Source: Rebecca billardiae RCC1528 (Eukaryota > Protista > Haptophyta). From it: a DNA stretch of 64,000 bases. The position numbers and the translations under genes are program-made. Below are positions 61,584 to 64,000 of this stretch, one piece after another. How positions within the stretch are numbered: position 1 is the first letter of the stretch; every line of letters begins with the position of its first letter. Below the pieces are notes generated by a model that saw nothing but the letters and a program-made list of their open reading frames with translations, was not told the DNA's origin and did not search any database. Location: positions 930,001 through 994,000 of the forward strand of contig OZ251231.1 in assembly GCA_965240325.2 (NCBI GenBank), read 5' to 3'.

Positions 61584-62552
61584 TCAGGAGCGCATCCTGC
61601 GCAACAGCAGTGCGAATCCCAGCGCGGCGCGCGCGGCCAGGCTTCCGGAGTCGTGTACCCGTCTGCGCCTGCGCGCGAGCACGAGGCGCTCGCCCCGCTG
61701 GAGCGACCCACGCCCCAGCAAGATGGCGCCCGACAGCAGTTCGTCCAGATCCTGCTGGCATCCGTCCACGAGCGCCGCGCGCTGGGCGCGTCGCGCGTCC
61801 TGCTCCTCCACGCTCGGGGCGGCGGCGTCGGCGCTGCCAGCTTGGTGCGCAGCGCGGGATGGCTCCTCACCAGGCGGCACGCGGCTCCAGATCTGCAGCT
61901 CGGCGGGGACGCTCGGCCACGAAGGTAACGGGATCGCCTCCGCACGTGCGAACCCTCCTGCATGCAGGGCTTGCAGAGCGCTCGGGCCAGCGGCCTGCGA
62001 CCCCGCATTGCCGCCATCCACCCAGGGCGAGTCGACGACGAGCGCGACGTGCGCACCGTCGAAGGCAGCGATGGCGTCCGCGGCCATCGACATCACGTGC
62101 GCGGGAGCGGTCTCGTCCACCTCGCACGGCGGCCAGCACAGCATGAGCGCCGAGCAGCGCACACCGGCCGCAGCGCCGGCATCGCCCTTGTCGACGCGCG
62201 TGAATGGGGGTGGCATGCACCAGCGCGCGTCGCGCTGGAGGGCGTGCTGCCAGTTGGGCCGCGCCTCGGGCTCAAGTGGCGCGGCATCGTATGCCTGCAC
62301 GCGCACGCCACGCGCGCGCAAGAGGCTCGCCCACAGGCCCGTGCCGGCGCCAATCTCGACCACGCCCGCGGGCTGCGCGACATGCGCGAGTGCGTCGAGC
62401 GCGCGGTCGCACGGTATGGCCCACGCGTAGATGCGGCGGAGAGGAGCCATGTACAAGGCCGCGTACGCCGCCTCGAAGCGCCCGACAAGCCCCGTGAGGG
62501 ACATCTCCCTCACGCAGCGCGAATGGAGCCGACGGAGCTCCGCCATCGTCAT
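61584..62552 (-). CDS. Class I SAM-dependent methyltransferase, uncharacterised family; start uncertain
   Basis: YAWAIP...ALDAL, motif I VVEIGAGTGLW, motif II VQAYD, ALMLCWPP. Confidence 0.82.
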   Translation of the reverse strand: MTMAELRRLHSRCVREMSLTGLVGRFEAAYAALYMAPLRRIYAWAIPCDRALDALAHVAQPAGVVEIGAGTGLWASLLRARGVRVQAYDAAPLEPEARPNWQHALQRDARWCMPPPFTRVDKGDAGAAAGVRCSALMLCWPPCEVDETAPAHVMSMAADAIAAFDGAHVALVVDSPWVDGGNAGSQAAGPSALQALHAGGFARAEAIPLPSWPSVPAELQIWSRVPPGEEPSRAAHQAGSADAAAPSVEEQDARRAQRAALVDGCQQDLDELLSGAILLGRGSLQRGERLVLARRRRRVHDSGSLAARAALGFALLLRRMRS

Positions 62553-62708
62553 CAACAACGCGGCCTCCTGAAACTCCAGAATGTTCGAGCAGAGATCGCA
62601 TCTCCGTGCAGACCTGGGCCCAGGATCGACTACGATAATTATTCGCGTTCGCGCCAATCAATCAGCGCTCTGATCAAACGCCCGGGCCCGCGAACGCACC
62701 GCATCGTA

Positions 62709-64000
62709 ATGCGCGCTAACGCGCTGTTGCACGCGGGCCTGCTCGCGGCGCTCGTCGGGCCTGGCGCGTCGTTCCGCGCACCCGGCCGCGTGCACCCCGG
62801 TGTGCGTGCTCCCATCCTACGCCGGGTGACGCAGCCCGCACCCATCGCGTGCTTCGCCAGCAAAACACTCGAGGACGAGGTCCCGCGCGAACGGCTGATT
62901 GAGATCTGCAACGCGCTGCGCGAGCGATGGGGCTCCGTCGAGCGGATATACGACACACTGCCGCACGCGACCGCGGACGGCGATGATGACGATGTCATCG
63001 ATATGGATGCCTTCATGCAGGCGCTCGTCGCCGCCAAAATCAGCGCGACGCCGCAGGAGATGGGCTCCATCTTCAAGGCATTCGATCTGGACAACTCGGG
63101 CACGCTCGAGCTCGAGGAGATCAGACTAGCGCTTCGCGAGAGCGGCGCGATCTTCCGCACGTATCAGCAGTCGCTCACCACGATGCTTGCCGCCATCGGC
63201 TCGGCGGCGCTCTTCGCCGCCGGCATCGCCGCCACGCGCGGGCTCTCGGACGCGGGCGACTTTGCGACCGCGTACATTGTGGAGGACTCGCTCTCGGTGG
63301 ACAACCTGTTCGTCTTCGTGCTGCTCTTCGAGTACTTCCGCGTGCCGCTGTGGCTGCAGCAGCGCTGCCTCACGCTCGGCATCGCCGGTGCGCGGCACGC
63401 GTCGACTCCGCTGCCGCGGCCGCGATCCGCGCGCGCGCGCGCACGCCCCCGCCGACCGCGCACCTCCCGCCCGCACGCGTCCCCTGCGCGCGCGCGCGGG
63501 CGCGCAGGCGCTGTGGTGCTCCGCGGCATCTTCATCGGTGGCGGGCTCGTGCTGATCGACAAGTTCCACGGGCTCGTCATCGGCTTCGGCCTCTTCCTCG
63601 TCTACTCGTCGTACAGCCTGCTCGCCGGCGGCGACGACGACGAGGAGGACGACATCGCGGACAACGCGGTCGTGCAGTGGGCGACCAGCACGCTCAACGC
63701 GACCAGCGACTTCGACGGAGGCCGGCTCTTCACGAAGCGCGGCCTGGAGCCGGGGGCGGCCGTGGGCGAGGGCCCTCTCGGCGTGCTGCTCTCAACGCTC
63801 GGCCGGCCCACGCCGCTGCTCCTCACGCTCATCTGCGTCGAGCTCTGCGACATCGTCTTTGCGGTCGACTCGATCCCGGCGGTGTTTGGCGTCACGTCCG
63901 ATCCCTTCATCGCGTTCACGTCCAACATCTTCGCCATCATCGGCCTGCGCTCGCTGTACTCGGTGCTGGCCTCGGCCGTGCAGGACCTGGTGCGCGCTCG
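62709..64000 (+). CDS. TERC: Plastid-targeted TerC-family membrane protein with an N-terminal EF-hand pair; partial (intron 63388-63507; next intron starts 63990)
   Basis: Signal peptide ending GASF plus an Arg-rich transit peptide; EF loop DLDNSGTLELEE; TerC motifs EDSLSVDNLFVF, G|AVVLRGIFI, VELCDIVFAVDSIPAVFGVT, FTSNIFAIIGLRSLY. Absent from the ORF track because the frame stays open to the window end. Confidence 0.93.
   Translation, partial: MRANALLHAGLLAALVGPGASFRAPGRVHPGVRAPILRRVTQPAPIACFASKTLEDEVPRERLIEICNALRERWGSVERIYDTLPHATADGDDDDVIDMDAFMQALVAAKISATPQEMGSIFKAFDLDNSGTLELEEIRLALRESGAIFRTYQQSLTTMLAAIGSAALFAAGIAATRGLSDAGDFATAYIVEDSLSVDNLFVFVLLFEYFRVPLWLQQRCLTLGIAGARHASTPLPRPRSARARARPRRPRTSRPHASPARARGRAGAVVLRGIFIGGGLVLIDKFHGLVIGFGLFLVYSSYSLLAGGDDDEEDDIADNAVVQWATSTLNATSDFDGGRLFTKRGLEPGAAVGEGPLGVLLSTLGRPTPLLLTLICVELCDIVFAVDSIPAVFGVTSDPFIAFTSNIFAIIGLRSLYSVLASAVQDLVRA

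Follow-up and report, generated by a model that had tools for sequence, protein, structure and literature searches.

Several described systems stand close to the gene reported here. Escherichia coli Alx, a riboswitch-controlled Mn2+ exporter of the TIGR03718 subfamily of TerC, has nine membrane helices in an N-out/C-in topology that is predicted and has been partly shown by cysteine accessibility, and conservative replacement of its acidic residues E86, D92, E213, D216 and D222 abolishes Mn2+ export (PMC10197570). Plant TerC is a thylakoid protein that is needed for photosystem II (PSII) biogenesis and interacts with ALB3 and with D1, D2 and CP43 (PMC4823308), and for TERC and ALB3 together a role in co-translational assembly or metalation of PSII has been proposed (PMC4823308, PMC10550928). 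Two further family members, Bacillus subtilis MeeF and MeeY, metalate exported Mn enzymes at the Sec translocon, and the same has been proposed by their authors for Arabidopsis TerC and PSII (PMC10550928). The role of TerC in plastids is disputed between help with membrane-protein insertion and delivery of manganese to photosystem II. Here we analyse a nuclear TerC gene in a 64,000-nucleotide stretch of the haptophyte alga Rebecca billardiae RCC1528 (assembly GCA_965240325.2, contig OZ251231.1, positions 930,001 to 994,000; hereafter the window, in whose own numbering all coordinates are given), the product of which carries an EF-hand pair fused to the N-terminal side of the TerC domain.

Over the aligned core, exon 1 of the algal gene is 34% and exon 2 43% identical to Alx, and the algal protein shares helices 2-9 and the five acidic residues with it. 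It differs from Alx in having an EF pair for helix 1, a predicted plastid presequence and a far more acidic central loop, and in being the product of a nuclear, intron-bearing gene without a riboswitch. Arabidopsis TERC (At5g12130) has, like the algal protein, a TerC domain and eight predicted helices; it is nuclear-encoded and plastid-directed, as is predicted for the algal protein. An EF-hand is not described for the plant protein (PMC4823308, PMC10550928), and the algal protein would have to cross additional plastid membranes, by way of its putative signal peptide. MeeF and MeeY belong to the same family and share its proposed logic, in which Mn2+ is moved from the cytoplasm-like side for proteins assembled across the membrane, but they represent other TerC subfamilies and have no EF-hand. 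PAM71/BICAT1, the established plant route for Mn2+/Ca2+ into the thylakoid lumen, is likewise without an EF-hand and belongs to a different family, UPF0016, which is distantly related to TerC (PMC10550928). An N-terminal EF-hand module on an effector is found in the ATP-Mg/Pi carrier SCaMC/APC (PDB 4zcu), which is among our sequence and fold matches, but that protein has four EF-hands and a mitochondrial carrier fold unrelated to TerC, and the likeness is one of working principle only.

Full-text searches for TerC with EF-hand, thylakoid, manganese, haptophyte, and diatom plus plastid returned no description of an EF-TerC fusion. The gene belongs to a TerC variant that is already present in public databases but so far undescribed, and the fusion suggests that the supply of metal to the photosynthetic membrane is under calcium control.

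An EF-hand pair and TerC helices in one exon

The fusion is confirmed as a nuclear gene on the + strand that starts with the ATG at 62709. From this codon frame 1 is open up to the end of the window, and exon 1 holds the EF region together with the first TerC helices, with no stop between them; the first membrane helix (TM1) comprises residues 155-177. In Pfam searches the read-through translation matches TerC (PF03741) with 120.9 bits against a cut-off of 27.8, and exon 1 matches EF-hand_8 (PF13833; 30.9 bits, cut-off 28, E 2.4e-7) and EF-hand_6 (PF13405; 30.2 bits, cut-off 25), both over residues 94-145, with EF-hand_1 at 24.7 bits falling just under its cut-off of 25.4. TIGR03718 scores 212.7 bits against a cut-off of 246.4, a shortfall that is expected of a query that lacks exon 3 and includes a translated intron, and the rival YkoY subfamily, TIGR03716, scores 45 bits only.

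An earlier sequence-only reading of this DNA had proposed an EF-hand-TerC fusion directed to a secondary plastid. The signal peptide ending in GASF and the transit peptide that it described are supported, at the level of sequence, by a hydrophobic start, the GAS motif before Phe22 and an Arg-rich stretch predicted to be disordered; its degenerate EF1 loop and canonical EF2 loop at 63084-63119 are correct in motif and position; and the open frame, with Pfam EF-hand and TerC matches above their cut-offs, upholds its view that a single exon encodes both the EF region and the start of the TerC domain. Its statement that characterised TerC proteins have no EF-hands agrees with the Alx sequence and with the published accounts (PMC4823308, PMC10550928, PMC10197570), and its stromal placement of the EF domain gains support from homology to the topology of Alx and from the positive-inside rule. 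Its further suggestion, that Ca2+ in the stroma might gate Mn delivery or PSII assembly, stays a conjecture. It did not remark on the 120-nt in-frame intron at 63388-63507, or on the last 11 bases of the window being the start of intron 2.

Intron 1 adds 40 codons (ARHAST...RGRAG) to the read-through translation, and these lie between two matches to TIGR03718, of which model positions 32-106 are in exon 1 (62709-63386) and 109-249 in exon 2 (63510-64000). Since the model is contiguous on either side of the stretch, the stretch is an intron; the final base of exon 1 (63387) is the first base of a split Gly codon. Both splice junctions are matched by the spliced homologue P0002, which reads LGIAGAVVLRG across intron 1 and AVQDLEYLEKS across intron 2, and the second junction is additionally confirmed by P0010. 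The remainder of the gene is supplied by a near-identical copy in an independent assembly (Logan contig L001, assembled from ERR14847148), in which intron 2 is 111 nt long and in frame and exon 3 (AYLEQSVAIVLGF...) terminates in TGA. The read-through open reading frame (ORF) has 576 codons and the spliced precursor about 499 residues. Over 1292 nt the window and L001 differ by three single-nucleotide polymorphisms, one of them synonymous and one in intron 1; the third replaces a residue of the transit region (F49S). An 8-nt indel at 62677, 32 nt upstream of the ATG, is a further difference, and the open frame upstream of 62709 is therefore noncoding. The same indel, together with overlap with a minus-strand ORF, rules out the in-frame ATGs at 62523, 62382 and 61962 as starts.

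It is exceedingly improbable that the fusion is a gene-model artefact, with EF and TerC made separately from an internal promoter or an alternative start, or joined only by misassembly. Such an artefact would be compatible with the fact that no RNA run is listed for this genome, but both parts lie in one stop-free exon, the identical structure recurs in L001 and in three related genomic contigs, complete transcripts of homologues hold both parts in one ORF (MMETSP P0069 and P0148, for example), and the spacing of the two parts is fixed at 66 residues. The gene is nuclear and intact and has three exons, and the alga that carries it is very GC-rich and of the haptophyte type.

One canonical EF loop and a conserved linker

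The window's own exon 1 was modelled with AlphaFold2 together with 20 homologues. The model has helices at residues 60-72, 74-83, 99-108, 115-125 and 135-144 and short strands in both EF loops, at 96-97 and 133-134, and over the EF pair the predicted local distance difference test score (pLDDT) is 88-94. The EF2 exit helix (135-144) leads straight into the long helix 147-177, which includes TM1, and the same arrangement of EF pair and linker is found in the model of the homologue P0006. The top Foldseek matches of the exon 1 model are all EF-hand proteins, with probabilities of 0.9-1.0 but E-values above 0.01, and include calcyphosine, cardiac troponin C lobes and the Ca2+-regulatory domain of the ATP-Mg/Pi carrier. 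Searched against PDB sequences, the family profile finds calmodulin at E ~4e-9.

Conservation separates the two loops. In an alignment of 21 diverse members, which apart from three close orthologues (P0003-P0005) are 31-40% identical to exon 1 of the window, D126 and E137 of EF2 are invariant and D128 and G131 at least 90% conserved. Across 150 family sequences the loop profile gives D at position 1 in 86%, D at 3 in 79%, G at 6 in 67%, I, V or L at 8 in 97% and E at 12 in 83%. The ligand positions of EF1 are not conserved in the close orthologues, for example GSDNFQQIDMEA, and are not even acidic there; in the EF1 region only the structural residues D98 and F102 are conserved. EF1 is, to judge from these residues, the structural partner in a one-site EF pair of which only EF2 keeps the calcium ligands, and one dead and one live loop are likewise found in the regulatory lobe of cardiac troponin C. 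In the juxtamembrane linker between the EF2 exit helix and TM1, R143, S145 and Y152 are invariant in the same 21 sequences and I148 is at least 90% conserved. The conservation of EF2 ligands and linker residues across such divergent members indicates that both are under selection.

The EF pair might serve as a structural or docking module that works without calcium, for example towards the ALB3/SecY machinery or ribosomes, with the canonical loop a relic. EF1 is indeed degenerate in most members, about a quarter of the family representatives have lost ligand residues of EF2 yet keep the domain and its linker, and plant TerC acts through protein contacts with ALB3, D1, D2 and CP43. We nevertheless consider such a module unlikely, as most members retain ligands 1, 3 and 12 in spite of the wide divergence of the family (31-40% identity to exon 1) and as a separate, C-terminal fusion in the cryptophyte clade, described below, brings two canonical loops. 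Together, the kept ligands and this second fusion argue that metal binding is a selected property.

Members with more than one potential site also occur. Both loops of the EF pair are canonical in P0018, P0029 and P0168, and the whole EF module is tandemly duplicated in P0050, P0071 and P0134, which are proteins of about 540 residues. From these duplicated and doubly canonical members, the ancestor may have had two working EF sites.

A family of fusions in haptophytes and dinoflagellates

The fusion is not peculiar to the alga for which the sequence-only reading proposed it: public databases hold a large conserved haptophyte/dinoflagellate family. A word search returned many TerC proteins with EF-hand Pfam domains, and a profile search with 20 diverse members added 120 further clusters, almost all of them fusions. 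In an architecture search with a hidden Markov model of the EF region, the N-terminal EF module was present in 124 of the 182 cluster representatives fetched (the script's count of 125 included P0094, which carries its EF-hands at the C-terminus). From the first residue of the EF2 loop to the Glu of EDSLSVDN, the distance is exactly 66 residues in 109 of 119 loops matched by regular expression. Named members come from Phaeocystis antarctica, whose protein is automatically named 'EF-hand domain-containing protein' in UniRef, from Prymnesium polylepis and from the dinoflagellate Amphidinium massartii. Both parts are joined in one ORF in MMETSP transcripts marked 'type:complete', such as P0069 and P0148, and the same structure is found in the three related genomic contigs. 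Among the sequences fetched, the EF-hand is absent from diatom, xanthophyte and most cryptophyte TerCs. EF-TerC is, on these searches, a large, conserved and ancient family of haptophytes and dinoflagellates that is public under automatic names.

Its history was reconstructed from the TerC core only, in a tree of 51 rows and 258 columns (IQ-TREE, LG+C20 with posterior mean site frequencies, PMSF) rooted on Alx. All proteins with N-terminal EF-hands form one clade (ultrafast bootstrap 100; Shimodaira-Hasegawa-like approximate likelihood ratio test, SH-aLRT, 97), in which the window protein and P0002 are sister to all other EF-TerCs (98/78); the others form a prymnesiophyte subclade (Phaeocystis, Prymnesium) and a subclade containing Amphidinium. 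The nearest outgroups are cryptophyte and then ochrophyte TerCs. In a FastTree tree of 196 rows the other EF-TerCs are united by a branch that excludes the window lineage, which falls on the side without EF-hands; the deepest node depends on the model, and the single EF-TerC clade is taken from the site-heterogeneous IQ-TREE runs. In those runs the N-terminal fusion shows a single origin, with the EF module appearing as an ancient part of the protein and not as an accident of one genome.

Two proteins of the cryptophyte clade, P0094 from Hanusia phi (UniRef A0A7S0HY79) and the unnamed P0091, carry an EF pair with two canonical loops at the C-terminus, and they are not sisters on the tree. Judged by this arrangement, the C-terminal EF-TerC is a second fusion of a different kind. 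With eight helices in these proteins, their C-terminal EF pair should lie on the same membrane face as the N-terminal pair, the stromal one.

Transport residues and the acidic loop

In an alignment with E. coli Alx (from NC_000913), the window protein keeps all five acidic residues on which Mn2+ export by Alx depends, two of them in the first and three in the second acidic motif of Table 1. Eight membrane helices are present in the AlphaFold2 model of P0006, a homologue derived from a transcript (mean pLDDT of the model 75), and hydropathy peaks and the alignment place the same helices in the window exons and in exon 3 of L001. No solved TerC structure was found in the PDB, either with the sequence profile, which returned EF-hand proteins only, or with Foldseek, which returned none at E <=0.001.

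The long loop between helices 4 and 5 contains on average 13.7 Asp plus Glu residues across the family. Algal TerCs carry 7-10 Asp/Glu in a row after helix 4, whether or not they have EF-hands, and the counterpart in E. coli Alx is only weakly acidic. This loop may provide a low-affinity surface that collects cations.

The loop also figures in an alternative in which the EF domain receives or senses the substrate, binding the transported Mn2+ or Ca2+ and, with the poly-acidic loop, handing it to the pore or gating the pore by load. The EF domain and the DDDEEDD loop are predicted on the same face; EF loops can hold Mn2+, a Mn2+-bound calmodulin N-lobe (3uct) being among the fold matches and a lanthanide EF protein having been converted to a Mn2+ sensor (PMC9907080); and bacterial TerC genes are, according to the name of TIGR03718, under a riboswitch for cytoplasmic Mn2+. 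Against this, the EF2 loop has Glu at position 12 and standard ligands of the Ca2+ type, with nothing that indicates selectivity for Mn2+, and a single site of ordinary affinity would make a poor store or chaperone. We give this alternative little credence.

Predicted plastid targeting and orientation in the membrane

The N-terminus of the window protein, judged by eye and with a crude script, is hydrophobic over residues 5-17, with a mean Kyte-Doolittle value of 2.24; PGAS comes next, in accord with the -3/-1 rule, and Phe is at +1 of the predicted cleavage site. After F22 the first acidic residues are those of LEDE (residues 54-57). AlphaFold2 leaves the presequence disordered, with most of residues 1-54 at pLDDT below 50 and residues 32-44 just above 50, and comparable Arg-rich regions are found in the orthologues P0003-P0005. 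Many complete family members have textbook motifs of the ASAFAP type, such as AGASAFAPAG (P0111), SGASAFAAPH and ASASAFAST, and the Amphidinium-containing subclade has ..FVxP.. motifs, which we take to be of the kind reported for dinoflagellate transit peptides. Targeting of EF-TerC to the plastid is well supported by these sequence features but not proven, and the likeness to plant TerC makes the thylakoid the most likely membrane. A lumen-targeting segment resembling twin-arginine translocation (Tat) signals was considered and rejected: RR at 38-39 is followed only by a weak, non-conserved hydrophobic stretch.

It is quite unlikely, in our judgement, that the protein belongs to another membrane (the endoplasmic reticulum or endomembranes, the plastid envelope or the periplastid membrane) and handles Ca2+/Mn2+ there in the manner of Golgi GDT1/TMEM165. 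The targeting call was made by eye and with a crude script, and no Phe directly follows the signal-peptide-like start in close orthologues, both of which would leave room for such a location. On the other side, the signal-peptide-like start and the Arg-rich disordered region are conserved, many members have ASAFAP-type motifs (P0111, for one) and the dinoflagellate-containing subclade FVxP-type motifs, cryptophyte and ochrophyte algae supply the nearest TerC clades, and the family occurs in taxa that do not calcify. A role in coccolith formation or calcification was likewise rejected, the family being present in Phaeocystis, Prymnesium and Amphidinium.

The alignment equates the algal helices with Alx helices 2-9. 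Alx helix 1 is missing, and the EF domain occupies its place and that of the cytoplasmic loop before helix 2; by this position it should face the side equivalent to the cytoplasm, which is the stroma. Charge is distributed accordingly in 19 family members, with a summed mean of 12.1 Lys plus Arg per sequence on the predicted stromal side (loops 2-3, 4-5 and 6-7 together with the C-terminal tail and the juxtamembrane segment at the N-terminus) versus 1.5 in the opposite loops. We infer that the protein resides in a plastid membrane, to the stromal side of which it exposes its EF domain, its poly-acidic loop and its C-terminal tail.

Discussion

The best reading of EF-TerC, and one that we incline to accept, is that TerC exports cations at the thylakoid membrane and that the EF pair, on its stromal side, switches it in response to Ca2+. 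With Ca2+ bound at its single competent site, the EF pair would take on another conformation, as the one-site lobe of cardiac troponin C does; the juxtamembrane helix, rigid and conserved, would transmit this change, and the stromal entrance of the TerC pore would open or close. Stromal Ca2+ would in this way tune the supply of Mn2+, possibly also of Ca2+, to the lumenal side, for use in building and repairing the Mn4CaO5 cluster of PSII, and such lumenal delivery of Mn2+ would match the co-translocational metalation proposed for Arabidopsis TerC (PMC10550928). Whether Ca2+ would activate or inhibit cannot be inferred. The protein-level switch might moreover do the work that a Mn2+ riboswitch does for alx and ykoY in bacteria; the nuclear gene of a plastid protein cannot use a Mn2+ riboswitch, and we infer from this that a fused metal-binding domain is a plausible substitute. 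More tentative, and in our view rather doubtful, is the general proposal that plastid TerC of haptophytes and dinoflagellates is a Ca2+-gated exporter in which the EF switch couples stromal Ca2+ signals, for instance at transitions between light and dark, to delivery of Mn2+ and perhaps Ca2+, a switch seemingly re-acquired at the C-terminus in the cryptophyte clade.

Several points weigh against a calcium switch on a thylakoid exporter. Ca2+ binding, localisation and transport are all predicted, from sequence and models, and even that TerC transports metal in plastids is so far a proposal. The degeneracy of EF1 is expected to leave one site and no cooperativity. The EF2 loop is degenerate in about 28% of the family representatives; truncated ORFs account for some of these cases, but in several, such as P0076, P0176, P0180 and P0190, the degeneration is genuine, and Ca2+ binding would thus be dispensable in some lineages. 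The prymnesiophyte subclade (P0014, P0027 and others) has Ala at the position of Alx E213, reading ALCD versus ELCD/ELSD elsewhere, while it keeps the canonical EF2 loop, and transport chemistry may accordingly differ within the EF-TerC family. The close orthologues P0003-P0005 have no Phe right after the signal-peptide-like start. The tree was built without plant, red-algal and cyanobacterial sequences, and orthology to plant TERC is outside its scope. Finally, the query for 62650-64000 listed no RNA runs for this genome, and the transcript is deduced from the structure of the gene and from the transcripts of homologues.

An ancient and conserved fusion of TerC with a putative calcium switch supports the cation-handling view of plastid TerC. 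The N-terminal fusion occurs in two main groups of ocean phytoplankton, with a different second fusion in the cryptophyte clade. The EF loop offers a built-in experimental handle on Mn supply or PSII assembly, and EF-TerC is a candidate stromal Ca2+ target in complex plastids, none such being described among TerC-mentioning papers, the literature that could be searched.

Additional features of the locus

The features of the gene within the window are collected in Table 1.

Table 1. Coordinates of the EF-TerC gene and its parts in the window
Feature	Coordinates	Strand	Description
Exon 1	62709..63387	+	Start codon, presequence, EF-hand domain, TerC helices 1-2, first half of helix 3
Signal-peptide-like segment	62709..62771	+	Residues 1-21, MRANALLHAGLLAALVGPGAS; predicted cleavage before Phe22, after GAS
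Transit-peptide-like region	62772..62873	+	Residues 22-55; Arg-, Pro- and Ala-rich, almost without acidic residues
EF-hand pair domain	62880..63146	+	Residues 58-146; two N-terminal helices, EF1, EF2
EF1 loop	62976..63011	+	Residues 90-101, DGDDDDVIDMDA; degenerate, with Asp at position 6 and Ala at 12
EF2 loop	63084..63119	+	Residues 126-137, DLDNSGTLELEE; canonical, with D1, D3, S5, G6, L8, E9, E12
Juxtamembrane linker	63120..63170	+	Residues 138-154, IRLALRESGAIFRTYQQ; joins EF2 exit helix to TM1
First TerC acidic motif	63279..63305	+	VEDSLSVDN, residues 191-199; E192 and D198 correspond to Alx E86 and D92
Intron 1	63388..63507	+	120 nt, GT..AG, in frame, stop-free
Exon 2	63508..63989	+	Second half of helix 3, helix 4, acidic loop, helices 5-6; Pfam TerC 90.1 bits, TIGR03718 109-249
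Poly-acidic stretch	63633..63653	+	DDDEEDD, in the long loop between helices 4 and 5; predicted stromal
Second TerC acidic motif	63840..63872	+	ELCDIVFAVDS; E, D and D correspond to Alx E213, D216 and D222
Intron 2, start	63990..64000	+	gtgcgcgctcg, 11 bases; remainder, exon 3 and stop beyond the window

Both introns are multiples of three in length (120 and 111 nt, the second at 2592-2702 of L001), are stop-free and begin with GTGCGCG. Introns that stay in frame and contain no stop are read through by prokaryote-style gene callers, and the practical consequence is that such callers deposit read-through proteins for the EF-TerC gene family. Spurious inserts or tails rich in Arg, Ala and Pro are found in the database proteins P0001, P0003-P0005, P0007-P0010 and P0015.

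The C-terminal tail carries a conserved amphipathic motif in this lineage, PPVP.(V/F)V+.SR.I......W..LTG (L001 2892-3038, P0002, P0007 and P0010). The function of Arabidopsis TerC is impaired by C-terminal tagging (PMC4823308).

Upstream, a divergent ORF of 357 codons lies on the minus strand at 61584-62657, with a weak match to Methyltransf_23 (24.9 bits, cut-off 27). Depending on the start codon, it begins about 50-190 bp from the TerC ATG, and the two genes, separated by 62658-62708, probably share a short bidirectional promoter region.

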